Shown here one piece after another: positions 3,726 to 47,310 of a stretch of 64,000 nt of DNA. A program made the position numbers and the translations under genes. Positions within the stretch are counted from its first letter, which is position 1. Every line of letters begins with the position of its first letter. The DNA lies in the NCBI GenBank assembly GCA_937625935.1, contig OW569360.1:124001-188000 (forward strand), given 5' to 3'. This stretch comes from Tetramitus jugosus. Its lineage: Eukaryota > Protista > Heterolobosea. Below the pieces are notes generated by a model. It saw only the letters and a program-made list of their open reading frames with translations. It did no database searches and was not told where the DNA came from.

Positions 3726-6700
3726 TCATGATGAATGATTAATCCTGCTCTTGAATCTCTTGGTTCGTGGAGGAGAGAGATAGGCAATCTGGCTATTGGT
3801 TCTTTTTCTTTTTCGTTCATGATTGGAGGAAGTGGTCTCTTGAAATGATGCCCAGGACTGCCACACTAAATTGTTCTTCAAATCTGTTGTGTGGCTGTCT
3901 GATTCTCCACTGCTAGTTGGTTCAGTTGTATTCGACCCTCGCAACTTTTGAGGATGCTTGATCTGGATGTTCTGTCTGATCCAATGCTTGATATGAGAGC
4001 TACATTGTTCACAGAAACTCGATACCACAGACGATTGCAACTGCTTTTCAATATCGAAGAGCAGAAGAACAGGTAGTCCATAGTTGATTGAATATGCCCA
4101 TTGCACTACAATAGAGATAAACGCACTATGCATCAAGAAAGGTTTCTCTAGTAGAAGCATCTTGATTGCAGTAGATATTTGAGGAAGCAGAGTGCTATTC
4201 GCTAACCTAGGGAGTAGAAACAAAGGTGAACATTTGTTTTTGAATACAACCTCGAGCACTATTAGCAGATTATCTTTCATATCTTGTGTGGAGTTGTTGG
4301 GAAACTGTTTTAGAACATTCAAGAACCACATTGATTCCATCACGGTCGAGGAGGGTTGAGTCTTCGAGAACGATGGAATCTGATTTGTATCTACTTTTTC
4401 CTCTTGTTTCACTTTTGTTAAATCTTCAGTGTTTTGACCAATTGACAGACAGTACTCTGAGATGAGGTCAATGAGTTCACTCGGAAGTCTCGGTTCATTC
4501 GTTTGTTTCGATAGATATATTGGCAATATTTTCGTGAGCTCCACAAAGAGAGCACTCAGGAAACGAGAGCAACGATTATCAAAATAGTATGGCAAATACA
4601 AGTTGTTAATGATGTCCCTTATTTGTGTAGCTCTGATATGTGTTGGATTCCTAGTATAGGCTGACAATGTCCAATAAAGCCAGCATCTAAATCCAGGTTT
4701 CGAGAAGAGTGATAAATAGTATTGCCGGCACCTTAAGTTCGGCATTTGTTGGTAGTGCGGGTCATGAGTGAATAAACGCGATTCTGTAGCCGATATCCAT
4801 GCATTCTTTGATTGTTTCTGAGCACTTTTGCTGTGTGTTTCGATGGACGAAAACTCTAGGTTTTGTCCTAACTGTTTAACAACTTTACCTCGGAAATGTT
4901 GCCACCAACCGATGATGTTAGTTACATCTGGGCCACAATATATATCTGACAACCATTCGAACCGATGAAACAGTGACTGGTTGCACCAAAAGCCATCAGA
5001 AAGCGTTGCAAGATCGTGATTCAATGTTCCGACCTGACCAATGATCTTATCTAAACTTGGAGTATATCTTGATATGACATATTGCGCGAGGTGACTCACA
5101 ATGCTTGTTGGATACACTTCATTACACATGACATCATTAAAGATATGTCTCCAAATATTGTTGTGCAATTTCGAGGTTTCACTGTACACCAACACGATTT
5201 CAGTTGGAGCAAACAGAACCCACTTGTGATCTGACATTGGAAGCTCATTTGAAGATCGCTCTATCTCAATACAACTTCTCAATAGATTCGTGTATGCAGT
5301 GATAAGTCCGTCAGAAATGAAAAAGCTTGCATAATTCTTAAATATGCGCATACAGCAGCTTAATAGCGTATGAACATTCCGTTTCATTGCCTGATCGGAA
5401 TCTTGAACTTGTTGGACAAACAATTGCTTCATGATTATTTTAGCAAGTGTTGTTGTGTCAACTAGGTTACCAGAGCACAAAAATTGAAAAATGCGTTGTT
5501 CAGTCACTAGATCGTTAAATCCATTCACATCCAACACTGCAGAAAGCTCTCTGGATGGGGGTTGAAGATGAAATGACTCCATGAACATCTTCTTAAATTC
5601 TAATTGATTCCTAGAAAAGTTCCGATTGCTCGACAATATGTGATGCAAGAGATTGAACAACTGCAGCGCTGGACCAAGTAGCTCTGTATTGTTTCTCCAC
5701 TTTACAAGATAATCCTGTTTCATGGCCAATAGTTGTTCGTAAATATTCACATGATTCTCGTCTATCAGCTTCATTATTGTGTCACATGATGAGTTGGCTC
5801 GGAATGAGTCCAAAATGCTGCACTGGAACTGATTTGTTTCTAGTGAGGTATCTGAAGTGGGTTTTAAAAGATTGGTAGGAATAGATGGGAACTTATCCAG
5901 GGCCTCTCTTCTAATTTCTTCACAATATTTCTGGACAGGTAACTGTATTTCGTCACTGGTTAAAATAACAGACAAGAGAGGGATAATAACTACTTGAATA
6001 TGATACACATTCTCTCGACTGAATCGATGCCGAATACAATCTAGAATAGACACAGCATCATATCGTTTGATAGCAGACAATAAATAGTTGCTCATTGAAT
6101 ATTGGGTCTTGCCAACAAACGATTGATAATGTAATGCTAAGGACCAATTGATAGCCATATGAACTTCTCTCGCTTCTATTATTTTATCGAGTAAATCGGT
6201 CAATGACCTCGTCGTATTCTGATTCGAAACCATCGTATGATAATAGAGGAACAAAAATCGATCAATAATGCTGCGACACGAATCGCCTATACAGTACACG
6301 TATGTTTGCCTATTCTTTCGACATATATCTTTCATCAGAATGATTGCGCACTTGGAAAACAAATCGATCAAACCATTCATTTGACTATTCTGTTGCAATG
6401 TACGAATCACAATCTCCTCAATTGCTAATGTCGCTCCACCGTTCATCTCACTTGAAAAACAGTGAATCATGCTGGAGATGGTTGATTCAAGCACTGAATG
6501 AGTCATTGTTTTTTGACACTGACTCACGAGCAGTACACAGACATGAGAGGAAACAAAGCGCGAAATGACATCACTTAGTTCACGCTCAGATGAACAACAC
6601 ATCTCATAGGCATTCAAGCTCAACGCAACAGCATCCAACAATTGTTGCTGATTATTTTTCAATGTCGTTATCGTCGCTGATTTATCCTTTGGACTGCTAC

Positions 6701-7118
6701 TACTCTTGCTGCTACCAACACCATTGCCATCATTGCTCACAGCATTACCAAAACGACTAGCAATAAAATAGAGTATCGCATCTCGAATAAACTTGCTCAA
6801 CGTTGTTAAACGGCACGACAACAACACTATTGAGTGATCATCATTGTTCACTGGTTCGAACAGAGAGCTCCACGATGAAGCTTGTTTGTGCTTTTGTACA
6901 AAACGACACAGTACTTGAATGATTTTTACAAAATGATCGATCGGCAACTCTGACGGAAAATGCACAAGCAGCCACTTGTGATTATCAACGTTCTTCATGT
7001 GTCGTTCATCATCATCTTCATCTTCATCAGATAGAGTGGTCAATATGGACCGAATTGTTTGGTTCAGTGAATTTTCATTCTCAACCGAATCATCATCAAT
7101 AATGATGATTGTGGCCAT
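3726..7118 (-). CDS. Hypothetical 1130-aa helical (ARM/solenoid-like) protein with C-terminal basic NLS-like motif
   Basis: Uninterrupted 3.4-kb ORF with Leu/Ile-rich helical composition and RKRKR near the C-terminus. No family securely recognised. Confidence 0.7.
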   Translation of the reverse strand: MATIIIIDDDSVENENSLNQTIRSILTTLSDEDEDDDERHMKNVDNHKWLLVHFPSELPIDHFVKIIQVLCRFVQKHKQASSWSSLFEPVNNDDHSIVLLSCRLTTLSKFIRDAILYFIASRFGNAVSNDGNGVGSSKSSSSPKDKSATITTLKNNQQQLLDAVALSLNAYEMCCSSERELSDVISRFVSSHVCVLLVSQCQKTMTHSVLESTISSMIHCFSSEMNGGATLAIEEIVIRTLQQNSQMNGLIDLFSKCAIILMKDICRKNRQTYVYCIGDSCRSIIDRFLFLYYHTMVSNQNTTRSLTDLLDKIIEAREVHMAINWSLALHYQSFVGKTQYSMSNYLLSAIKRYDAVSILDCIRHRFSRENVYHIQVVIIPLLSVILTSDEIQLPVQKYCEEIRREALDKFPSIPTNLLKPTSDTSLETNQFQCSILDSFRANSSCDTIMKLIDENHVNIYEQLLAMKQDYLVKWRNNTELLGPALQLFNLLHHILSSNRNFSRNQLEFKKMFMESFHLQPPSRELSAVLDVNGFNDLVTEQRIFQFLCSGNLVDTTTLAKIIMKQLFVQQVQDSDQAMKRNVHTLLSCCMRIFKNYASFFISDGLITAYTNLLRSCIEIERSSNELPMSDHKWVLFAPTEIVLVYSETSKLHNNIWRHIFNDVMCNEVYPTSIVSHLAQYVISRYTPSLDKIIGQVGTLNHDLATLSDGFWCNQSLFHRFEWLSDIYCGPDVTNIIGWWQHFRGKVVKQLGQNLEFSSIETHSKSAQKQSKNAWISATESRLFTHDPHYQQMPNLRCRQYYLSLFSKPGFRCWLYWTLSAYTRNPTHIRATQIRDIINNLYLPYYFDNRCSRFLSALFVELTKILPIYLSKQTNEPRLPSELIDLISEYCLSIGQNTEDLTKVKQEEKVDTNQIPSFSKTQPSSTVMESMWFLNVLKQFPNNSTQDMKDNLLIVLEVVFKNKCSPLFLLPRLANSTLLPQISTAIKMLLLEKPFLMHSAFISIVVQWAYSINYGLPVLLLFDIEKQLQSSVVSSFCEQCSSHIKHWIRQNIQIKHPQKLRGSNTTEPTSSGESDSHTTDLKNNLVWQSWASFQETTSSNHERKRKRTNSQIAYLSPPRTKRFKSRINHSS

Positions 7119-7136
7119 TCTTTTCGAGTACTCACA

Positions 7137-8359
7137 ATGTGCTTTCGTTTGCTATGCAGGAGTGTTTTTTCACAAAGCGGCCGAATTACTTCTCCGCCAA
7201 GGCCAAAAAAAACTGGAACAACACAAAAACCAATGCAAGCCGCAGATCTGGAAATCAAGAATGAGTTCTTTTCACTCATTGCACAAGGTGGAAAACTAAA
7301 GGTGGAAGAGGATAGAGTTGGAGCCATGAAATTCTATTGTGAGGCTGTCAATCTCTGTCCATTTCATTATGAGAGCTATGTGGAACTGGGAGTTGGTTTT
7401 TTGTTGATAAAACAGCCGATTTATGCTCTGAGAAGTTTTCAATATGGATTGGATTTTGCGTTTATGAGCTTTGAAGATGAAGCAAGCAGTGAGAGAGTGC
7501 AGGGCTATTATAGAGAAATCTTACTAGGGTTGATGAATGAGGTCAATGAGAGTTGGATCCAAGCACGCAGTCATTATAAGAAAGCCACAAAGTTGTACAG
7601 CCAGGGATTCTATGGGGCATTCAGTGTTGGTGTCACTTATGGCTACTGCTTTCATACGAACGTTGTTGAGAACAGTCGTAAAGCAAGTAAATGGTACCTT
7701 CGTTCTATCGAGTTGTTGCACAAGGATCCACATTGTGCACGGTATTGGTCATTCTTTGAATCGGTCATTTATACGAACATGGGAAGAGCACAACATGGAG
7801 GTGGATATTTTTACGATGCACTACATTCTTCGAGTACTGCAATTCAATTGAGAAATACGAACATTCAGGCTCATCTGATACAAGCAAAAGTATACAACTC
7901 GATGCTCAATCCTGAGAAGGCGCTTGAGAACTATGAATATTCAATTCAATTCTTTCTCAAGAGACTTGATAGGCTCGAACTGACTTTTGAAGTGGATCCC
8001 AGGCAAGAAGTACGCGATAGTATTGAATTCACAAGATTACGAATAGTGGAAATTATCAACGACAAGGCATACTGTTTATCTAATCTGAGTATGGACAAGG
8101 CAAAAGAAGAAGGACAGAGGGCAATTCAGCTCTTTCCGAGCTACAGTCCCCTTCCTTACATTTTTTTAGCCGACTCTAGACCACCTGAGGTCGCAATCTC
8201 AGTGTTGTCACAAGGGATCGAAGCAAGTTCTGGTAAGGATGGCATCGCGCATTGTATGATTATCGTTCGGAATTGTACAAGTCAATTTCCATGCCTGAGG
8301 AGGCAGCGAAAGATCAGATAAGGGCAAAACATTCACGTAATCAGGTCCGATATCACTGA
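7137..8359 (+). CDS. TPR-repeat protein with mitochondrial-presequence-like N-terminus; apparent frameshift near 8249 (ORF track stops at 8321)
   Basis: Multiple TPR-like units (IYTNMGRAQHGGGYFYDALHSSSTAIQL; AHLIQAKVYNSMLNPEKALENYEYSI). The last TPR (ALYDYRSELYKSISMPEEAAKDQIRA) lies in another frame ending TGA 8357-8359. Confidence 0.7.
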
Positions 8360-36488: not shown

Positions 36489-38714
36489 TTACACCCTGAC
36501 TATGTTGAGACGTTGATCAGGCGAATCATTGCATACCCAGAGATTGGCATCTGTTGAATCTGTGTTCAAGTTCGCACACAAATCTGGATTCATAATTTTC
36601 GAAGAGAGATTCGTAATAAGGGAGCAACTCTTCTTTTTGTTATGTGTCAATGGGAATTGCCAGAGTTGTTTTGTTCGGAAGTGACAAGGCCACAGAATCA
36701 GTGGTGATGTTGGCTCATCTGGTCCAGAATAATCCAAACACATTTGATACTTCTTATTAATCAGAGCACACATGGTAGAGTTCTTGGCTTGTACGAAGCA
36801 CTTTTCATTCTCGTCATATTTGATATCATGCGGGTCAGTGCATGCTGCGATCATCCATTCTTGTTCCTCAAGGGATTCCCGTACAGCAGTTGCAGCGTCA
36901 CCTTCATCTATCAGATGGTTGCATGGAAGGGCATGAACTGAATTATCATCGAATGCGGTCAAGCATGTAGCTTCATCAGAGAAGATATGATATGAGGTTT
37001 TGTCTCTCACTTGGTTACTACTATCATCCATCCATGCATCCAGCTCATCAAGCAGGAATGTATCATTTGCAAACTTTCTTGCGAACAGTGCAGTCCTTTC
37101 GTTCTTCAGGTATGGAAGATCTTCGGAATCAAAGTTATCAGGATGTCGACCACAAGAGTCAGCGATCCTATCAAAGAAGCATTCAGCAGTATCTCTCCAC
37201 TTGATCGATCGGAGGTTATTATGAACAATCTCATGACAGAATGGGCTAGCCTTGATAATAGTCTGGAAGAATAATTCGTCTGAAACCAGCATGTTGTCAA
37301 TATATCGCAAAAATTTAGGTACAAGAAGCTCATCATGCATAAAGAACTTGCAAAGTGAATTGTGCATGATAAACCATTGAGATCCACTCCAAATATCAAT
37401 TCCTCGAGGCAATGGTCTCCATCCTGCCAAATATAAATAATTATCACATTCTGCAAAGCCGAGTTTAATCGGTTTGTTATCTCTCAAGTCGTTTAGATGC
37501 ATATCAACATAGCTGATATCCTTCTTTCCAAGCAGGTATGCATTCACTGCTAATTCCTGGACAATCTCCTTGTTGGATCTTAGAGGATAATCTGCTCCAC
37601 TCAAATTGATACAGTATTCCCAATCATCAGGAAAATCTCGATGTAGAACTTTCATTGATTCCATTGTGGCATAAATCATGCTTGGACCTCCCCACGTAAT
37701 AGAATATTGATTGAACACGATGACATTAGGCCTTTTCACGGCGAAACGTTTGTACAGCTCGCCAATTTTCTGATTTACTTGATTCTTGTACTCATCAGTC
37801 GACTTTGAATCAATGTGGACAACATAATAGAAATTTGGGTCATAGATTCTAGCCAACAAGCGCCTCACATGATCAATATTATTGTGTAGCAATAGAATAT
37901 ATGCCAACTTGATATTAAAGTACTCTTTTGGTACTTGTGACACAATTGGGTTAGGATCCAACTCATATTGTTCTCGATGTTTGACTAGTTGTTCATGTAA
38001 GGGCGTATTTTGCTGATTTTCAGCCTCATGATGCTCATTGGCTATATTCATGCGTCGTTTCACCTTTTGATTCAAAGATACGCCTGATTTTCTTTGTATC
38101 AGAGGCTTCTCTGTTGTTGCAGTACGATTTTGTTTACTTGCTAACTGAGTCACATTTGCAGCATTTTCTACAACATTGGCTGATCCATCATCTTTATCAT
38201 CAGCATCATCATGTTCGTCATTTTCATCACCTAATACTTCCACTGGTCTTGGACAAAATGAAGGAAACGAAAACAAATCTTCCTCATCATGGTACAGTGC
38301 CCTATTGTTGATCATGTATGTCTCTGCAACCTTTAGCTTACAAGTGTATGATTTGATACGTTCAATCGATGGTCCAATATTACGCTTATCCACATCTGAA
38401 AACTCTTTCCACAATCTCTTAAACATGACTCTTGCTTCCAAATCCTTCACTTGATTCTGACCAATGTGGTGATCTGCAGATCTCTTCTTGTTTGCTGCCT
38501 GTGCTGCATCATTGTCTGATTGTCTTGACCTTGGAGAATTTCCAGCAATGATGGGAGGAATCTGTTCTGCTGTTTCTGCTGCTGTTTGTTTCTTCAAGAG
38601 ATAAAAGAAGAAGATGGCAATCAAGCAGAGAACAATTGAAATGACAATCATTGCCTTTTGAGAAGAAGAAGACTTCTTGGCACTCACTGAATCCTTGTGC
38701 TTCTTGGTTTCCAT
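36489..38714 (-). CDS. GT14 (XYLT-like) type II membrane glycosyltransferase with C-terminal ricin-B lectin domain
   Basis: TM anchor, LAYILLLH, YYVVHIDSKS, ITWGGPSM, INLSGADYPL, GSQWF, DELFFQT, LFARKF. Tail has CLD/QxW ricin repeats (EQEW, KQLW). Confidence 0.88.
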   Translation of the reverse strand: METKKHKDSVSAKKSSSSQKAMIVISIVLCLIAIFFFYLLKKQTAAETAEQIPPIIAGNSPRSRQSDNDAAQAANKKRSADHHIGQNQVKDLEARVMFKRLWKEFSDVDKRNIGPSIERIKSYTCKLKVAETYMINNRALYHDEEDLFSFPSFCPRPVEVLGDENDEHDDADDKDDGSANVVENAANVTQLASKQNRTATTEKPLIQRKSGVSLNQKVKRRMNIANEHHEAENQQNTPLHEQLVKHREQYELDPNPIVSQVPKEYFNIKLAYILLLHNNIDHVRRLLARIYDPNFYYVVHIDSKSTDEYKNQVNQKIGELYKRFAVKRPNVIVFNQYSITWGGPSMIYATMESMKVLHRDFPDDWEYCINLSGADYPLRSNKEIVQELAVNAYLLGKKDISYVDMHLNDLRDNKPIKLGFAECDNYLYLAGWRPLPRGIDIWSGSQWFIMHNSLCKFFMHDELLVPKFLRYIDNMLVSDELFFQTIIKASPFCHEIVHNNLRSIKWRDTAECFFDRIADSCGRHPDNFDSEDLPYLKNERTALFARKFANDTFLLDELDAWMDDSSNQVRDKTSYHIFSDEATCLTAFDDNSVHALPCNHLIDEGDAATAVRESLEEQEWMIAACTDPHDIKYDENEKCFVQAKNSTMCALINKKYQMCLDYSGPDEPTSPLILWPCHFRTKQLWQFPLTHNKKKSCSLITNLSSKIMNPDLCANLNTDSTDANLWVCNDSPDQRLNIVRV

Positions 38715-40071: not shown

Positions 40072-41163
40072 TTATTTGGAGCAAGTAGCTCTGAGAAATG
40101 ACCAGATGCAGTGTTCGTCCTTTGTTTTGGTTAATTGTGGTACCCTTGTCTTATCTCTAATCTTACCGCTCAAGTACATGATATCATCGTTTCTATCCTG
40201 ATCGCCTCCCAATCGACTGAGACCAACATTGACAATATGATACAACTTTGTGTTATTGGGCACAGCATGAACAAGTCTCCATTTGGACAACACTGGTGAT
40301 TGGTCAGCATCGTGATGAGGTATCAATGAGGCTGACATACCGTACTCTTCCAACAATTCACCACCCAAGTCTGTTTCAGGAGCTGAAAGCTCTTTCAATC
40401 GCCCATGTAAATCACTGAACAAAATAATGTACTCGCCGTTGCCAACATGACTCAAAAAACAATCATGTGACAAATCGAACTTCGTCAATGTTTCGTTCAT
40501 CATGATCGCATCCGCTAGCAACGGATTCGGTTGCAGCACATTGGCAGTTGCAGAACAAATCATTGAATAGTGAGCAGGTGCAAGGGGCACGTTCTCTGAT
40601 AAAGCTTGTGGTATCAATCTCTCGAATCTCCACAGGAGCTCCTTTGTACTTGGGGCATTTTGCCTGCTCCAATCCACCATTTCAGGAATATTGTCCTCTG
40701 ACTCTCCCTTCAAATACTTGCCACTCTTCACATTCTGCACACAGTACACATGATTCAACGTGTGGTAGTCTGACGGAATGAGACGCCACTGTTGGTGCAA
40801 ACTGCGTTCCGTACTGGATCCCTGCCACAAAAAGGGTGTCACTCTGGATCGATCAGGAAAAAGCATCCATTGTTTTGCCTGAGTGTGAGGCATGGTGTTT
40901 CCATCGATGCAGTGCGGTGTTTCAACCATGAAATTTGTTTTGATCGAACATCGAATCTGTTGTGCCGCTAGGTCGTCAGAGGAGGAGTGACTGGCTTGCA
41001 TGACATCGACAAACCACCACTGCGATTGGCTCATGATGTTCGGAGCGTTGTTGAGAGCCATTCTCATGTGGTTGGACACGGGTTGTCTCACTAAATGAGT
41101 ATCTGCATCCAGACAGAGACCATTCTTGATGCATGTGATCATGTACTCGCCTGATTCCATCAT
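40072..41163 (-). CDS. Ricin-B/beta-trefoil lectin-like protein without signal peptide
   Basis: YMITCIKNGLCLDA, QSQWWF, HQQWRL, YCVQNVKSGKYL, ELLWRF, SKWRL, HCIWSF: repeated (Q)xW trefoil motifs, probably two domains. Confidence 0.7.
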   Translation of the reverse strand: MMESGEYMITCIKNGLCLDADTHLVRQPVSNHMRMALNNAPNIMSQSQWWFVDVMQASHSSSDDLAAQQIRCSIKTNFMVETPHCIDGNTMPHTQAKQWMLFPDRSRVTPFLWQGSSTERSLHQQWRLIPSDYHTLNHVYCVQNVKSGKYLKGESEDNIPEMVDWSRQNAPSTKELLWRFERLIPQALSENVPLAPAHYSMICSATANVLQPNPLLADAIMMNETLTKFDLSHDCFLSHVGNGEYIILFSDLHGRLKELSAPETDLGGELLEEYGMSASLIPHHDADQSPVLSKWRLVHAVPNNTKLYHIVNVGLSRLGGDQDRNDDIMYLSGKIRDKTRVPQLTKTKDEHCIWSFLRATCSK

Positions 41164-41477
41164 CGTTGTTTGCTGTTTTTTGTCCTTTCTTGGGCTGTCA
41201 GCGATCGCTCAACCAAGTTCGTTTTTTTCCGACTGAGACAGTCGGGAAGTTTAAGCTTCGCTCCCCGAAAGGATTCGAACATTCGATCTAAAAATGTTGT
41301 CTTATTGGTGATCCACATTCAAAGTTTTCACACGAGATCTGATCAATTCTTTCTGTATTTAGAGAGATTTGTGGTGCCTGGGGTGGTATAAATTGGAAGT
41401 CTTCAGATGTGTGTTTTCACTTTTTCACAACACAGCATTAAAACCTACAAACACCCAACTTCATAAACTGTTCAAAC

Positions 41478-42098
41478 ATGAATTCCAAGGTACAAGTATT
41501 CCTCATCGTGCTTCTGGCTCTGGTTCTTGGCTCCTATTGCCAAACTATTATCTCCTTTGATCAAAATGTCCTGTTCGTTCCTGCTGATGGAACAAAGGTG
41601 TACAGAGTTAACATGGCTGACAACACTTATGTTCAATTCCAAATCACTACAGCTGGTACTAGCAACTTCAACTTCCAGATTAAGCAATTGGCTCAAAATC
41701 CATTCTCTGCTGTTATTCCAGCCAACAACAAGGTTCTTGGAATCTTCAAGTTTGAGACACAACTTGATGCAGCACCTCGTCCTTTCACTGGTATCGTCTC
41801 CATGAAATACCAAAGTAATCAACTGGTTGATACCGCCAATACTGTCAGTGCCATCGTCTACTCTCCTTCCAACAACTCATGGAACAGAAGAGGAGTTCTA
41901 TCCACTTCTTCTAACGTGAATCCGACAGCTGTAGTGAGTGATAGTGACTTTGATGCAAGTTCTGACCTGTTCTTTGGTTTCATTGAGAATACTGGAACCC
42001 TACCAAGACCATCAGCCGCCTCAACTACTATGAGTAAGGCGAAATTAGCTCTTTCCTTTGGTGCAGTAGTTGGAGTCTGCTTGGCCGTTCTCGTATAA
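41478..42098 (+). CDS. Secreted, probably GPI-anchored, beta-rich surface protein
   Basis: Signal peptide MNSKVQVFLIVLLALVLGSYC. Small-residue site SAAS followed by a C-terminal hydrophobic tail. Confidence 0.75.
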   Translation: MNSKVQVFLIVLLALVLGSYCQTIISFDQNVLFVPADGTKVYRVNMADNTYVQFQITTAGTSNFNFQIKQLAQNPFSAVIPANNKVLGIFKFETQLDAAPRPFTGIVSMKYQSNQLVDTANTVSAIVYSPSNNSWNRRGVLSTSSNVNPTAVVSDSDFDASSDLFFGFIENTGTLPRPSAASTTMSKAKLALSFGAVVGVCLAVLV

Positions 42099-42211
42099 TT
42101 GAATACCACTCGCCTCTCATTGGACATTCCAATTTGAAAGTTGTACATAGTAATTGAATAAATATTGGTATTTTACAAAAGTTACATAATGCTTTTCTTG
42201 AACAAGTTCTT

Positions 42212-43228
42212 CTACTTTAAAGTAAATTTTCGAACAAACGTATCGTAATCATGGTGATGTTTCTTGTTGCTACTCCTCCGAACTTCAATAAGTTGGTTCA
42301 ACTTTCTCTTGCCTCGCACGGGAGGATGAACCACCTTTGGGTTTTCATTTCCTGAATGCCATGACCACTCTCGCTCCTCTTCTTCACTGGACAACTGATT
42401 CGCACTCGGATCGCCTATTGGTGAAATGTCTTGTTTAGAGGAGAATGAGGAAACAGAAGTGGAAGCTGAGAGAGGAGATGATTGACTGATTGATTGATTC
42501 AGTACTACAGGTGGTTCCTCCATGGGAGTATTGTTCACAAGAGCAGTGAAAGACAAGGTAGTTGGGCTACACTCGATAGATTCTCCTACAACCGCGTGAG
42601 ATTGGTTATTGGTGCTTGAAATGTATGGTACAAGAGGTTCATTGATAGAGTGACGACTATAGTTGTCCACTGACGATGATGACGATGGTGGACATGTTTT
42701 GGTGCTTGCTTCGATGAGCGCGCGATCTCTGCTCTGTACGGAGAGCCACAACTGCTGAATCAGAGACTTTTGTTGAGAATTTTCATTTCTTAACATATCG
42801 TTCTCTTGTTTTAGTGTTTCCATCATCAAGGCACTGTTGTTGATCGTGGATGGTTGGTAGTTTGGTGTTGAACCAACAGACGCATGACTACTGTTTGACA
42901 CTTGGTCAAGTCCCATGAAACTCTCTCCCAAAAGGTCTGAACAATTGACCATCGAGCTGGACAGGGAAATAAACTGTGTGTTGCTGAGACAACTCGCAGT
43001 GTTCTCTTCTCTTCGTTCTCTGCTGACACCTGAACTGAGAGGTGAATGGTCAAAGAAGCAGTCACCACCAGTGTATGTAGAGTATTGGTGGGATTGGATA
43101 TGAGAGCTGGTAAGAAATTGATCTCCCAGTGGTGTATGTAATGAATGATTATAGTTCAATAACTCTTCATCATTGGTGTCTAACTGTAAAAGTGTGGACG
43201 GTGGTCTCTCTTGCTCTCGATTGGACAT
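42212..43228 (-). CDS. Hypothetical Ser-rich protein with short coiled coil and basic C-terminus
   Basis: ETLKQENDMLRNENSQQKSLIQQL coiled coil and RGKRK basic patch. Confidence 0.65.
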   Translation of the reverse strand: MSNREQERPPSTLLQLDTNDEELLNYNHSLHTPLGDQFLTSSHIQSHQYSTYTGGDCFFDHSPLSSGVSRERREENTASCLSNTQFISLSSSMVNCSDLLGESFMGLDQVSNSSHASVGSTPNYQPSTINNSALMMETLKQENDMLRNENSQQKSLIQQLWLSVQSRDRALIEASTKTCPPSSSSSVDNYSRHSINEPLVPYISSTNNQSHAVVGESIECSPTTLSFTALVNNTPMEEPPVVLNQSISQSSPLSASTSVSSFSSKQDISPIGDPSANQLSSEEEEREWSWHSGNENPKVVHPPVRGKRKLNQLIEVRRSSNKKHHHDYDTFVRKFTLK

Positions 43229-43569
43229 TTGTTGTAGTGGTGTTGTGGAGGAATTACGTACGGTAGATCGTTGGTGTTGTTGTGTTGATGAGTGTTGTTG
43301 GTGTTGTTATGAATCAAACAGGAATTCCCCCTCCTAGGATTAGTATTATTAGCTCTCAGAGCTGGTCTGGAATCTTTTGCGATCAAAGTTGGAACATCTG
43401 CACGTTATTAGCATAACACTCAACGCTCCTCCAAAAGAATCTGAACTCTCTCAATTTGCCTCGGAAGATTGGGACCGGAGCTTATCGTATTGATTTGGCA
43501 ATGTCACGGATAATTTTTATTATCTCAACTGAAAAAGGAAGCAAAGCTATACCTTTATTCGGTTCTGCT

Positions 43570-44868
43570 CTATCCCTTTGCTACATGCTTCTTCTTAGTC
43601 ATTCTATGACTCTTGAGTCTCCTTGGTTGCTGTTCAACTACATTGTCCCCCAACGCATTGTAATCTGCTTCACCCGAAGGATAGTAGATTGTGCTGGAGT
43701 ATGGGGCGTAACCACTCGATGGATACCAAGAACTAGATGGATAGTATGAGCTTGAAGGATACCACGAACTGGAAGGATACCAGCTGCTTGAAGGATAATA
43801 GCTGCTTGATGGATACCACGAGCTGGATGGATACCAAGAGCTAGAAGGATACCATGAGCTGGATGGGTACCACGAGCTGGAAGGATACCAACTACTGGAA
43901 GGATAATAGCTGCTTGATGGATACCACGAGCTGGATGGATACCATGAACTTGATGGATAATATGAGCTGGAAGGATACCAAGAGCTAGATGGATAATATG
44001 AGCTGGATGGATACCATGAACTAGAAGGATACCATGAGCTGGATGGATACCACGAACTAGATGGATAGTATGAGCTTGAAGGATGCCACGAACTGGAAGG
44101 ATACCAGCTGCTTGAAGGATACCATGAACTAGAAGGATACCATGAGCTAGATGGATACCACGAACTAGAAGGATAATATGAACTCGATGGATACCAGCTG
44201 CTTGAAGGATACCAACTACTGGAAGGATAATAGCTGCTTGATGGGTACCATGAACTCGATGGATACCAACTACTGGATGGATACCAAGAGCTAGATGGAT
44301 ACCATGAACTAGAAGGATACCAAGAACTCGATGGGTACCAACTGCTTGATGGATATCCTGAGCTACGACAGCCCTCACATCTGCAGTCAGGACCATGTCT
44401 CAAAGAGTCGTAGTGGTAGTCCCAATGACCCTGCTCTTCAGCTAATGGCTTTTGCACAGAAAAGTGGCTCTTGCACTTGCTGACACAAGCAGAAATGAAA
44501 TCATTCTTCTTGAAACATTGATTCACACATTGCTTAAACTGTTGAACAAGAGGTGAAACTCTCAATTCATCTGTCATCACTCTTCTCTTCTTCTGATAGT
44601 TTGGCTTATTAACACGAGGGAGTTCATCCTTCATCATAGGACGGGCAATAGGAGCTACAAGTCTCTTCTTTGGAATTTGTTCCTTCAACTCAAAGAGACA
44701 TCTCTTGATGCAGGTGCTCTCTTTTTGAACACAATTCTTGAGGCATTTCTTGTAGAAAGTCAAGGAGTCGATCGGTGTTGACTTGGAAACCTTTGCAGAC
44801 ACCAGTGAGGATGCAAAAAACAAAAGGGTAACACACAATACCCAAAGCAGCTGTGTATTAGCTCTCAT
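43570..44868 (-). CDS. Secreted Cys-motif protein with 36 tandem (W/Y)YPSSS hexapeptides
   Basis: Signal peptide from ATG 44868 (MRANTQLLWVLCVTLLFFASSLVSA), two CX3C...CX3C motifs, HGPDCRCEGC, then the repeat array. Confidence 0.85.
   Translation of the reverse strand: MRANTQLLWVLCVTLLFFASSLVSAKVSKSTPIDSLTFYKKCLKNCVQKESTCIKRCLFELKEQIPKKRLVAPIARPMMKDELPRVNKPNYQKKRRVMTDELRVSPLVQQFKQCVNQCFKKNDFISACVSKCKSHFSVQKPLAEEQGHWDYHYDSLRHGPDCRCEGCRSSGYPSSSWYPSSSWYPSSSWYPSSSWYPSSSWYPSSSWYPSSSYYPSSSWYPSSSWYPSSSYYPSSSWYPSSSWYPSSSWYPSSSWYPSSSWHPSSSYYPSSSWYPSSSWYPSSSWYPSSSYYPSSSWYPSSSYYPSSSWYPSSSWYPSSSYYPSSSWYPSSSWYPSSSWYPSSSWYPSSSWYPSSSYYPSSSWYPSSSWYPSSSYYPSSSWYPSSGYAPYSSTIYYPSGEADYNALGDNVVEQQPRRLKSHRMTKKKHVAKG
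43711..44358 (-). repeat. Coding tandem array, 36 x 18 nt
   Basis: 648 nt of units such as TGG TAC CCA TCG AGT TCT and TGG TAT CCT TCT AGT TCA. Confidence 0.97.
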
Positions 44869-45233
44869 AACGCGCAATATTATCTTTGTACTTTTTTTTG
44901 TGATGTCTGGAGGTTTCTGTTGGCGGTTGAAGGATGTAATTGTGCTCGAACAATTGAAAGGAACTCCAGGCATCAGCAGAAAAGTGAGTTGATAAATTCC
45001 GCTGAAAATCAACCACAAAGAGCAGGTTCTCAGCAACTGAGTAAACTTTCTCAGATATGCACTTGGGAATGAGCTGTCTTTTGGGCTCTACAAGATAAAA
45101 GAGATATCGGTTGCCATTCGCCGCAATTCGGATAAATCGAATTTTGTTTTATTTTTCCGCGTGCGGGTCGGAAAAAAAGGGCCCTGCAAAAGATACTCAA
45201 GCCAACCAAAATCACAACAAAACAACAAATACG

Positions 45234-46659
45234 ATGATTAGGAAACTCTCTCAACAATCCTTGTCTGCTGTTTCAAAGGCTGCAATCCAAAGAGTAAGTA
45301 CTCTATTCACGATGCTCGATCTTCATTACCACAAAAAAACAACAAGCCCATCGTTTGATCAAAAACTAACGTTTTTTTTGGTTTTGATTACTTTTTTTTT
45401 CACCAACATCTAAACAGAACGCCGCAGCAGCTGTCTCTCGCTCCATTGCCACCACCTCTGTTACACCAGTCAGAGCCATTCACCTCAACAAGCAACATGT
45501 GAACAGAGCTGTGATCAAGAGCAACATTGTTCAAAATCAACAACAAATCATGTTCAAGAGAAATTACTCAACAGGTGCACCAGAAGAAGTTGTCAAGGTT
45601 CCAGAGTTGGGTGACTCCATCACTGAAGGTACCATTGAAGAATGGGTCAAGAATGTGGGTGATTTTTGTGAGATGGACGAAGTTGTTGTCAAGATTGCCA
45701 CTGACAAGGTCACTGCTGATATCAGAGCACCAGTCAACTGCACACTTACTCAACAATTCACCAAGGTTGGTGACAATTGTGGTGTAGGTGCTCCATTGTA
45801 CGCTTACAAGGCTGGTGGTGAAGCAAAGGCAAAGCCTGCCGCTGCTGCTGAACCAGCAAAGAAGGCTGAAGCTCCAAAGCCTGCCGCTGCTGCTGAAGCA
45901 CCAAAGAAGGAAGCACCAAAGGCTGCACCAAAGCCATCTGCTCCTGCAAAGCCAACTGGTGAGAGAACAGAGACTAGAGTCAAGATGCCAATGATTAGAC
46001 AACGTATTGCCACTCGTCTCAAGGAGAGTCAAAACACCTATGCCATGTTGACCACATTCAACGAAGTTGACATGTCTGCTTTGATCAGCTTGAGACAAAA
46101 GTATCAAGATGAGTTCCAAGAGCAACACGGAATCAAGTTGGGCTTCATGAGTCCATTTGTCAAGGCATCTGCTCTCGCTCTTGAAAAGTACCCAGTTGTC
46201 AATGCCGTCATTGAAGGAAACGAGATTGTGTACCGTGATTTTGTCGATATCAGTGTTGCTGTTGCTACACCAACCGGTTTGGTTGTTCCAGTCATGAGAA
46301 ACTGTGAAAGCAAGAGCTTTGCCGATATTGAGAAGAACATTTACCAGTTGGGACAAAAGGCAAGAACCAACTCTATCACCATTGATGAAATGAAGGGTGG
46401 TACATTCACCATCTCTAACGGTGGAGTGTTCGGATCCTTGATGGGCACCCCAATTATCAACCCTCCTCAAAGCGCCATTTTGGGCATGCATGCCACCAAC
46501 AAGAGACCTGTTGTTGTCAATGACCAAATTGTCATCCGACCAATGATGTACTTGGCTTTGACTTATGACCACAGAATAATTGATGGTAGAGAGGCTGTCT
46601 CCTTCTTGAAGACTATTAAGGAGTTGATTGAAGATCCACAAAAGATGCTTCTTTTGTAA
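45234..46659 (+). CDS. DLST: 2-oxoglutarate dehydrogenase E2, dihydrolipoamide succinyltransferase (exons 45234-45293, 45418-46659)
   Basis: Presequence, lipoyl domain (ATDKVT), [37 protein letters not shown]. Intron GTAAGT...CTAAC...CAG. Confidence 0.97.
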
Positions 46660-46735
46660 ATGAATAAAAGAAAAGATAGATATTTTAATGTACTTTGGAA
46701 TGCTTGATCCTGATGGATTGTCGAAGATGACACCT

Positions 46736-47310
46736 CTATTCATCTTGCATCATCGTCTCCGAGTTTTCATTCTCCTCGCTCAAGCCTTGAAAGATTGGTA
46801 ATTGCTGAAACGATGATGTCAATTGACTATTCATAAAGAGTAAAAAGAATCACAAGAGCAATGTTAGCTCACAAGAACAAGAAAAAAACCTGGGAGCATT
46901 GCAACAAAAAGAAAAAGACAATAGATCCAAAAACAAAAAACTTTGCAAGCTGGAATGTATTCATTCAATTGTGAAGATACATACGTTTTTTCTAGGTAAG
47001 CCTTCTGCAATTGCTCATACCGTTCTTGTTGTTGCTCTCTGGTCATATCTGTTCCTGGCAACTCATCCAACACTTCCAAGCTCTGTCTCATCTCTTCATT
47101 CAACTTTGTGAGACGAACATAGATGGTTTGCTTGTAATCCGTGCCAGAGTAATTGGCACTGTCTTGCACACGAGAAATGATATCACTCATGATGGGCAAA
47201 AAGTTAAAGTTTGTGTGTTTGATTGATGTGGTGGTGCTCGCGGTATCCTCATCATCGAGCTGTCCATGTTCATTGTCTTGAGGTGGTGCTACCGTTGTTT
47301 CATCCTCCAT
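46736..47310 (-). CDS. MED9: Mediator subunit 9 (exons 47310-46985, 46826-46736)
   Basis: FLPIMSDII...LDELPGTDMTREQQQERYEQL...KTQLTSSFQQLPIF after removing intron 46827-46984 (GTATGT...ATAG). Confidence 0.75.

Follow-up and report, generated by a model that had tools for sequence, protein, structure and literature searches.

A transcribed repeat gene of Tetramitus jugosus predicts a secreted protein with 36 aromatic-Tyr-Pro-Ser hexapeptides and defines a small orphan family

What kind of protein, if any, is encoded by a reading frame that repeats one hexapeptide 36 times, and is it the peptide or merely the DNA that has been kept? This question is raised by a locus of the heterolobosean Tetramitus jugosus that lies in a stretch of 64,000 nucleotides (nt) of contig OW569360.1 (assembly GCA_937625935.1, positions 124,001 to 188,000 of the forward strand), hereafter called the window. 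An original prediction, made from the letters alone, had proposed that positions 43570-44868 encode a secreted protein with 36 near-perfect (W/Y)YPSSS units under protein-level selection. The reading frame and the secretory architecture were borne out. A complete, intronless coding sequence of 432 amino acids (aa) plus stop occupies 43570..44868 on the minus strand; it is open from the ATG at 44868 to the stop codon at 43570-43572, without internal stop, and opens with a leader followed by Cys modules. We conclude that the repeat gene is real, is transcribed, exists in a single copy and encodes a protein with secretory architecture. Judged by its predicted product and those of its relatives, it founds a previously undescribed small orphan family, characterized by a signal peptide, one or more four-Cys hairpins, an array of aromatic-Y-P-S-S units and a basic tail. 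So far, this family has been found in a single small clade, whose protists come from soil and groundwater.

The array (aa 171-386; 43711..44358, minus strand; 648 nt) was delimited by unit, codon and repeat analyses. It consists of 35 contiguous [G/W/Y][Y/H]PSSS units and a terminal WYPSSG. The predicted count of 36 was correct, and the description of the units holds for 34 of them at the two aromatic positions, the exceptions being a unit that begins with G and a unit with H as its second residue; in addition, the final residue of the last unit is G. At position 1, W occurs 27 times, Y eight times and G once, and position 2 is Y except for the single H. Tandem Repeats Finder reported periods of 18, 36, 54 and 108 nt. 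In composition, the array is 50% Ser, 32% Trp plus Tyr and 17% Pro, and it contains no Lys, Arg, Asp, Glu or Cys at all. As had been read for the first and middle Ser, Ser4 is encoded by TCN in 35/35 regular units, with all four TCN codons in use, and Ser5 by AGY in 35/35. Ser6 is TCN in 25/35 and AGY in 10/35 regular units, and Pro is CCA in 19/35 and CCT in 16/35. The 35 regular units comprise 26 distinct 18-mers, 9/35 duplicating another unit. Among units, the mean pairwise proportion of synonymous differences (pS) was 0.73, compared to 0.12 for nonsynonymous differences (pN), and pN arises almost entirely from the W/Y alternation at position 1 and from the codon-class switch at Ser6. The variation within the array is concentrated at third positions of the minus-strand frame, which is therefore the coding frame. 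When the 26.35-Mb genome was searched with a degenerate DNA pattern for YPSSS-x-YPSS, all 33 matches fell inside the repeat gene, while a reversed control gave 0. A profile search of the same genome returned only the gene itself.

Close relatives of the gene were recovered with tblastn from two metagenome contigs, whose N-terminal parts are 96% (L008) and 94% (L009) identical to that of the window protein, with synonymous distances (dS) of 0.01-0.05. By these distances the two contigs represent strains or alleles of the same species. The first carries the whole gene, with 19 nt upstream of the ATG and 67 nt past the stop. All indels that distinguish the strains in the N-terminal part are multiples of 3, and the His/Cys cluster that precedes the array is identical in both contigs. 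The ratio of nonsynonymous to synonymous substitution rates (dN/dS) for this part is uninformative in the three same-species sequences, with only 7-8 differences per pair. A sequencing run (X2) also contained minority contigs with the in-frame indels of L009 at 44426, 44585 and 44610 (one 6-nt loss and two 3-nt gains), which suggests either a second divergent haplotype in the isolate or a strain mixture. The arrays themselves comprise 36 units in the window, 35 in L008 and 24 in L009, numbers to be read with the reservation that short-read assemblies may have collapsed arrays. Unit 18-mers shared with the window numbered 30/35 in L008 and 11/24 in L009. Within the window array, units 18 apart were identical at a proportion of 0.611 of third positions, compared to 0.485 in shuffles (p=0.001), indicating the trace of an old 18-unit block duplication. 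Adjacent units, on the other side of expectation, were less alike at third positions than shuffled ones (0.429 versus 0.488, lower tail about 0.01, without correction for the testing of 24 lags); such a weak signal would fit the survival of slippage-resistant arrays.

Two more distant orthologs, from two related uncultured species, were recovered by way of genome context. The relatedness of these species is given here as identity of the E2 component of 2-oxoglutarate dehydrogenase, which is encoded by the neighbour of the repeat gene in the window. On a Logan contig from a species with an E2 83% identical to that of the window (L012), the ortholog and the E2 gene are divergent neighbours, an arrangement shared with the window. 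The ortholog encodes, in this order, a leader, C-x3-C-x6-C-x3-C, C-x3-C-x10-C-x3-C and degenerate (W/Y)YP(P)SSx units, within which the contig stops. On a contig from the Joint Genome Institute (JGI), from a species with an E2 74% identical (L011), the ortholog encodes a leader, two Cys modules, about 38 units and a basic tail. Its units are 25 YYPSSS, 10 YYPSWSS(S/P), 2 YEPYPSSS and a terminal YYPSSG. Module 2 of this protein reads C-x3-C-x9-C-x3-C once an inferred intron at 5352-5456 of that contig is removed; the donor of this intron is GTAAGT, and a TACTAAC box precedes its AG by 11 nt. Downstream, at 6677..7597, follows the ortholog of the gene that lies downstream of the repeat gene in the window. 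L012 has a C-x-C-x-C cluster among its first repeats and L011 a single Cys at the equivalent place. N-terminal identity to the window protein is 32% for L012 and 28% for L011. In the alignment (A2), 6/8 hairpin Cys positions are invariant; of the remaining two, one is displaced in L011 and the other falls in the second exon of that ortholog. C42, C53 and C57 are invariant in the aligned rows, and C46 is shifted by one residue in L011 (C-x4-C). Thus both L012 and L011 have the architecture and the Cys framework at a conserved genomic position, on which we base family membership.

Since BLASTP between the arrays of the different species gave no match, owing to composition filtering, we compared the arrays by motif and codon counts. 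The rule Ser4=TCN/Ser5=AGY is specific to the lineage of the window: L011 mixes both codon classes at all three Ser positions, always uses CCA for Pro, and has its Trp inside the eight-residue variant unit. The reading frame of the array is unbroken in four independent sequences. From these comparisons, arrays appear to be rebuilt within lineages, and what persists is the aromatic-Y-P-S-S(S) peptide and its spacing. That the motif is kept across species at 28-32% N-terminal identity, and with other Ser codon classes, is stronger evidence of protein-level selection than any within-array statistic. The proposal of selection on the protein is thus upheld both by the divergence among units and by orthologs that keep an array behind the same Cys framework. 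The accompanying view of an old array needs to be divided: the peptide motif is conserved, but the array as DNA turns over, as seen in its species-specific Ser codon rule, the trace of a block duplication and the 35 and 24 units found elsewhere.

These observations bear on two other explanations of the array. A neutral, recently expanded, microsatellite-like repeat without a function of its own could account for the apparently strain-variable number of units (36, 35 and 24) and for the trace of a block duplication. It would, however, hardly produce third positions near saturation in a peptide that is almost invariant, a frame unbroken in four sequences, or a motif kept in two other species at such low N-terminal identity, and we regard it as extremely improbable. 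The array might instead be a multi-core precursor from which hexapeptides are excised and modified, as in the ribosomally synthesized and post-translationally modified peptides (RiPPs) of the fungal dikaritin type, an option that the original prediction had listed. Many identical, short aromatic cores within one secreted precursor would suit such a function. Unlike dikaritin-type, kexin-processed precursors, however, the array has no Lys or Arg in aa 171-386 and no dibasic core flanks; with Asp and Glu also missing from all 216 residues, kexin-type processing sites between the units are absent, and the basic clusters outside the array (KKR and KKRR) are not conserved in the orthologs. Moreover, unit length varies in L011 (YYPSWSSS, YEPYPSSS), the units of L012 are degenerate, and no modifying enzyme was seen among the inspected open reading frames (ORFs) and called genes beside the window gene or beside L011. 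A multi-core precursor is therefore disfavoured, and we consider it very unlikely.

In addition to the orthologs, a gene on contig C10 of the same genome as the window (142058-143104; L006 1058..2337) encodes a protein in which a leader is followed by a single C-x3-C-x10-C-x3-C module, repeats and a basic tail. The repeats are Ser/His/Arg-rich, with FFADS(W/Y) junctions and YYPSSS motifs, and we regard the gene, on its predicted product, as a paralog at the level of architecture. An inferred intron of 107 nt (1246-1352 of L006) interrupts the gene in phase 2, at the codon just before the fourth Cys. Its position and phase agree with those of the inferred L011 intron, both being derived from GT..AG boundaries and the reading frame only. 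In searches, the paralog and the L011 ortholog were used as single exons.

The part of the window protein that precedes the array begins with a predicted signal peptide (aa 1-25; 44794..44868, minus strand), recognized by a hydrophobic core and small residues at -3/-1 and presumably cut after V-S-A. Equivalent leaders end in A-S-A in L012, S-N-A in L011 and V-N-A in the C10 paralog. Translation of the minus strand then gives Cys module 1, C42-x3-C46-x6-C53-x3-C57 (aa 42-57; 44698..44745), and Cys module 2, C114-x3-C118-x9-C128-x3-C132 (aa 114-132; 44473..44529). Between the modules lie the basic clusters KKR (aa 67-69; 44662..44670) and KKRR (aa 93-96; 44581..44592). A His/Cys cluster follows at aa 148-167 (44368..44427), with four His and then C-x-C-x2-C (Cys 162, 164 and 167). 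Behind the array, the C-terminal tail (aa 387-432; 43573..43710) combines degenerate Y/P/S sequence, an acidic patch and a Lys/Arg/His-rich end. The mature protein would contain 11 Cys, an odd number, including those of the His/Cys cluster. The array is flanked by basic regions, the N-terminal domain having an isoelectric point (pI) of 9.5 and the 46-residue tail one of 9.6, and the Lys-rich Cys modules carry net charges of +6 (module 1) and +5 (module 2). No hydrophobic segment suggestive of a glycosylphosphatidylinositol (GPI) anchor or a transmembrane helix was seen on reading the window protein.

The Cys modules raise the possibility that the gene encodes a precursor of cationic helical-hairpin peptides with antimicrobial or signalling activity, which would be released by kexin-like cuts at KKR and KKRR, the array serving as a carrier, pro-region or sorting part. 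As in plant alpha-hairpinins, the C-x3-C-xn-C-x3-C motif occurs twice behind a signal peptide, in modules that are Lys-rich and predicted to be helical, with a basic cluster counted for each module. AlphaFold2 modelled module 2 as helix-turn-helix (aa 106-120 and 124-134), with a predicted local distance difference test score (pLDDT) of about 62-68. Module 1 shares its x6 spacing with the most frequent form of the plant 4C motif, and modular precursors composed of a signal peptide, a cassette of modules and a C-terminal region are known (PMC11591084). A bacterivorous amoeba might plausibly need such peptides. Several features nevertheless speak against this explanation. KKR is not conserved at its position in L012 or L011; at the place of KKRR, L012 has non-basic residues, and that part of the linker is absent in L011. 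Module 1 has the same spacing in L012 as in the window, but in L011 it is acidic. The curation rule for alpha-hairpinins, which allows at most two Cys that belong to no motif (PMC11591084), would exclude the window protein, whose three extra Cys (162-167) are not in a hairpin arrangement. Unlike alpha-hairpinins, the window protein comes from a protist, is without sequence homology to the plant families (Pfam Vicilin_N matched it with E=2.7 and 8.3 bits, below the cut-off of 26.7), and has a 216-residue aromatic/Ser array fused C-terminally. The array, which is the largest and most conserved part, would be left without a role. We consider a hairpin-peptide precursor unlikely, and the resemblance to alpha-hairpinins, which is one of motif, may well be convergent.

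In agreement with the original prediction, in which no family was recognized, no characterized family was found in Pfam, word-index, phmmer or PDB searches. With the protein, its orthologs, the paralog and the neighbours as queries, Pfam gave nothing above cut-off for the repeat family, neither an enzyme nor a known domain. The N-terminal part (aa 1-175) was without a match in a word-index search, and word-index matches to the repeat part were rejected as compositional, with 27-41% identity over part of the array. When aa 25-170 were compared with 1.84 billion representatives by phmmer, the lone match (P0005) was a spurious-looking repetitive ORF that shares only a short Cys/Ser/His word, and it was likewise set aside. 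PDB sequence searches, with the single protein or a 4-row profile, returned chance-level rows only; a feature search of the ESM Atlas gave no usable match, the exact window proteins were absent from a collection of 15 billion proteins, and a full-text literature search for the hexapeptide strings found none. Foldseek comparison of the N-terminal AlphaFold2 model with the PDB returned nothing at E<=0.001, and the model of the array, which had no confident fold (pLDDT 49), was kept out of fold searches. Orphan repeat proteins are common in protists. Mistranslation in the databases contributes to the blank in protein searches: the public call on the L011 array (5537..6349), made by prokaryote-style gene calling, is in the wrong frame and yields a His/Ile/Ala-rich product, which a protein query in the true frame cannot recover. 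Relatives of such genes are therefore hidden in protein databases, and blank protein searches overstate the isolation of these genes.

The original prediction had staked itself on a transcript in this frame, and RNA-derived contigs cover the coding sequence. Eight soil metatranscriptome runs from eight studies held 28-38% of the sampled query words; words of the repeat gene were also present in groundwater metagenomes and in runs labelled with three organism names. We aligned contigs of four runs to positions 41400-46800 of the window. In soil metatranscriptome run X9, a 530-nt contig covers 44315-44846, and RNA-derived contigs are colinear with the coding sequence over 44315-44846 and 43610-43775. 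The X9 contigs at this locus are RNA-derived because the neighbouring E2 gene is spliced in the same run (45293>45418, GT..AG); the same splice was found in run X17. In run X6, probably a culture transcriptome whose RNA origin is a guess, contigs cover 43610-44846 and the E2 gene, while depth is zero over the intergenic 45020-45381 and over the downstream neighbour (41400-43571). Coverage of genes with none between them is what RNA should give. Both RNA contigs end at 44846, which corresponds to codon 8, Leu in the window and Phe in L008, and this break is probably an assembly-graph bubble rather than a transcript start. Joints that skip 27 and 20 whole units in contigs were not used as alleles, being possible de Bruijn collapses. 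We conclude that the repeat gene is transcribed.

What, then, might the protein do? To our knowledge, the walls of heterolobosean cysts and spores, like the surface coats of these organisms, have received little molecular characterization. The structural-polymer and glycosylation-scaffold functions named in the original prediction are both plausible for a protein of this sequence. We tentatively favour the view that it is an extracellular, probably O-modified polymer of a matrix or wall that acts through aromatic cross-linking or stacking, a view we hold with somewhat less than even confidence. On this model, the protein would be exported and built into a matrix outside the cell, for instance the wall of a cyst or spore, a coat on the cell surface or a layer that serves adhesion. 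The uncharged, Ser/Pro-rich array would form an extended, non-globular rod, whose Ser triplets may carry O-glycans or phosphate. The Trp/Tyr-Tyr pairs, at their strict six-residue spacing, would be the working sites, where oxidative cross-links (dityrosine-type) form or where the pairs stack, either with each other or with chains of polysaccharide. The helical modules with their disulfide staples, together with the odd Cys and the basic tail, could dock the rod on partners or oligomerize it. Selection would then act on the peptide motif and its spacing, with the DNA of the array meanwhile rearranged.

Several observations weigh against this model. The signal peptide was called by eye and not by a predictor. 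The AlphaFold2 model of the N-terminal part is of low confidence (mean pLDDT 52), and in it module 1 appears not as a hairpin but as one long helix (aa 35-63, pLDDT about 65-69). Cationic four-Cys hairpins suit an antimicrobial peptide as well as a docking element. Strictly cyst-specific expression is not suggested by X6, where the contig depth of the repeat gene is about that of a tricarboxylic acid (TCA)-cycle gene, contig depth being a poor measure that cannot rank expression. Finally, a glycosyltransferase gene near the repeat gene in the window (see below) is not syntenic in L011 and therefore lends no real support to glycosylation.

Alternatively, the protein might not be a wall component but a sticker-and-spacer material that the feeding amoeba secretes as an adhesive or mucus; aromatic pairs separated by PSSS spacers would then make it coacervate or gel on surfaces, on prey or on soil particles. 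Regular aromatic stickers, an uncharged spacer and basic ends would fit such a material, as would the presence of transcripts, at housekeeping-like contig depths, both in bulk soil RNA and in the run that is probably from a culture. Searches brought up only low-complexity look-alikes for the array, such as a GYPSSG-repeat insect protein named prisilkin-39. SGYPSSG-like stretches of this kind occur in low-complexity proteins of insects (including the one so named), bacteria and lichens; unlike the window array, these have neither Trp nor a strict period nor shared flanking domains, and they are not relatives. The adhesive is subject to the same limits as the wall polymer, contig depth again being unable to rank expression, and we judge it rather improbable.

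The array would at most act in the way of extensins or Tyr-rich wall precursors, from which it differs both in the characteristic repeats and in ancestry. Extensins undergo O-glycosylation and oxidative Tyr cross-linking, and the idea of such modifications in the window protein is borrowed from there. Like extensins and other hydroxyproline-rich glycoproteins (HRGPs) of plants and green algae, the window protein is predicted to be secreted, is built of short Ser/Pro tandem units with regular Tyr, and is expected to be extended. Unlike them, it has one Pro per unit, no Ser-Pro(3-5), Trp as the dominant aromatic residue and N-terminal Cys hairpins, and the two share no homology. Eimeria GAM56 and GAM82 are reportedly secreted, Tyr-rich precursors of the oocyst wall, linked to wall formation and dityrosine. 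The window protein resembles these in being Tyr-rich, predicted to be secreted and from a protist, but the Eimeria proteins have no regular hexapeptide array or four-Cys hairpins and are unrelated in sequence. By analogy with extensins, one could speculate that the family is a convergent, protist-specific counterpart in which strictly spaced aromatic pairs form an 'aromatic ruler' in a wall or matrix polymer. Six extended residues would span about 20 Å, roughly two cellobiose repeats; the pairs might align with fibrils of glucan or chitin and be fixed there by oxidative cross-links of Tyr and Trp, with the hairpins as docking knobs. We think this specific form of the model unlikely to be correct, but if true, it would give the Heterolobosea a structural protein class that is new, perhaps together with an equally new cross-link chemistry based on Trp. 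Independently of the ruler, the gene provides a concrete, transcribed, species-conserved candidate for a component of the heterolobosean wall or coat, with an unusual Trp-rich periodic motif and transcripts in bulk soil RNA. It also provides a case of peptide-level selection on a tandem array whose DNA is reshuffled.

The T. jugosus genome assembly comprises 26.35 Mb in 56 contigs, and the GC content of the window is about 41%. In a single-gene tree of E2, the window, L012, P0007 and L011 form a clade (100/98) that is sister to Acrasis kona (94/96), so that this clade is probably heterolobosean on the evidence of E2. The E2 gene of the window starts at an ATG at 45235, upstream of the mechanically called ORF, and contains a 124-nt GT..AG intron at 45294-45417 that is spliced in X9 and X17.

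On the other side of the repeat gene, the downstream neighbour (ORF 42212..43228, minus strand) has no Pfam domain and is conserved beside the repeat gene in L011. Within this ORF, 64 nt at 43134-43197 are missing from X9 record 29 and from the metagenome contig L009. The ends of the gap on the gene strand are CC..AC and not GT..AG, and its removal shifts the frame relative to the ATG at 43228; the missing 64 nt must be a strain deletion or else an intron of an unusual kind, and the model of the neighbouring gene is unsure to that extent. Further along, 5 kb from the repeat gene, a GT14 'Branch' glycosyltransferase with a C-terminal ricin-type lectin domain is encoded at 36489-38714 on the minus strand (Pfam E=8.5e-34 and 8.2e-07). 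No member of the GT14 family was found among the called genes of L011, and this neighbourhood is not conserved. A tandem beta-trefoil protein is encoded at 40072-41163.

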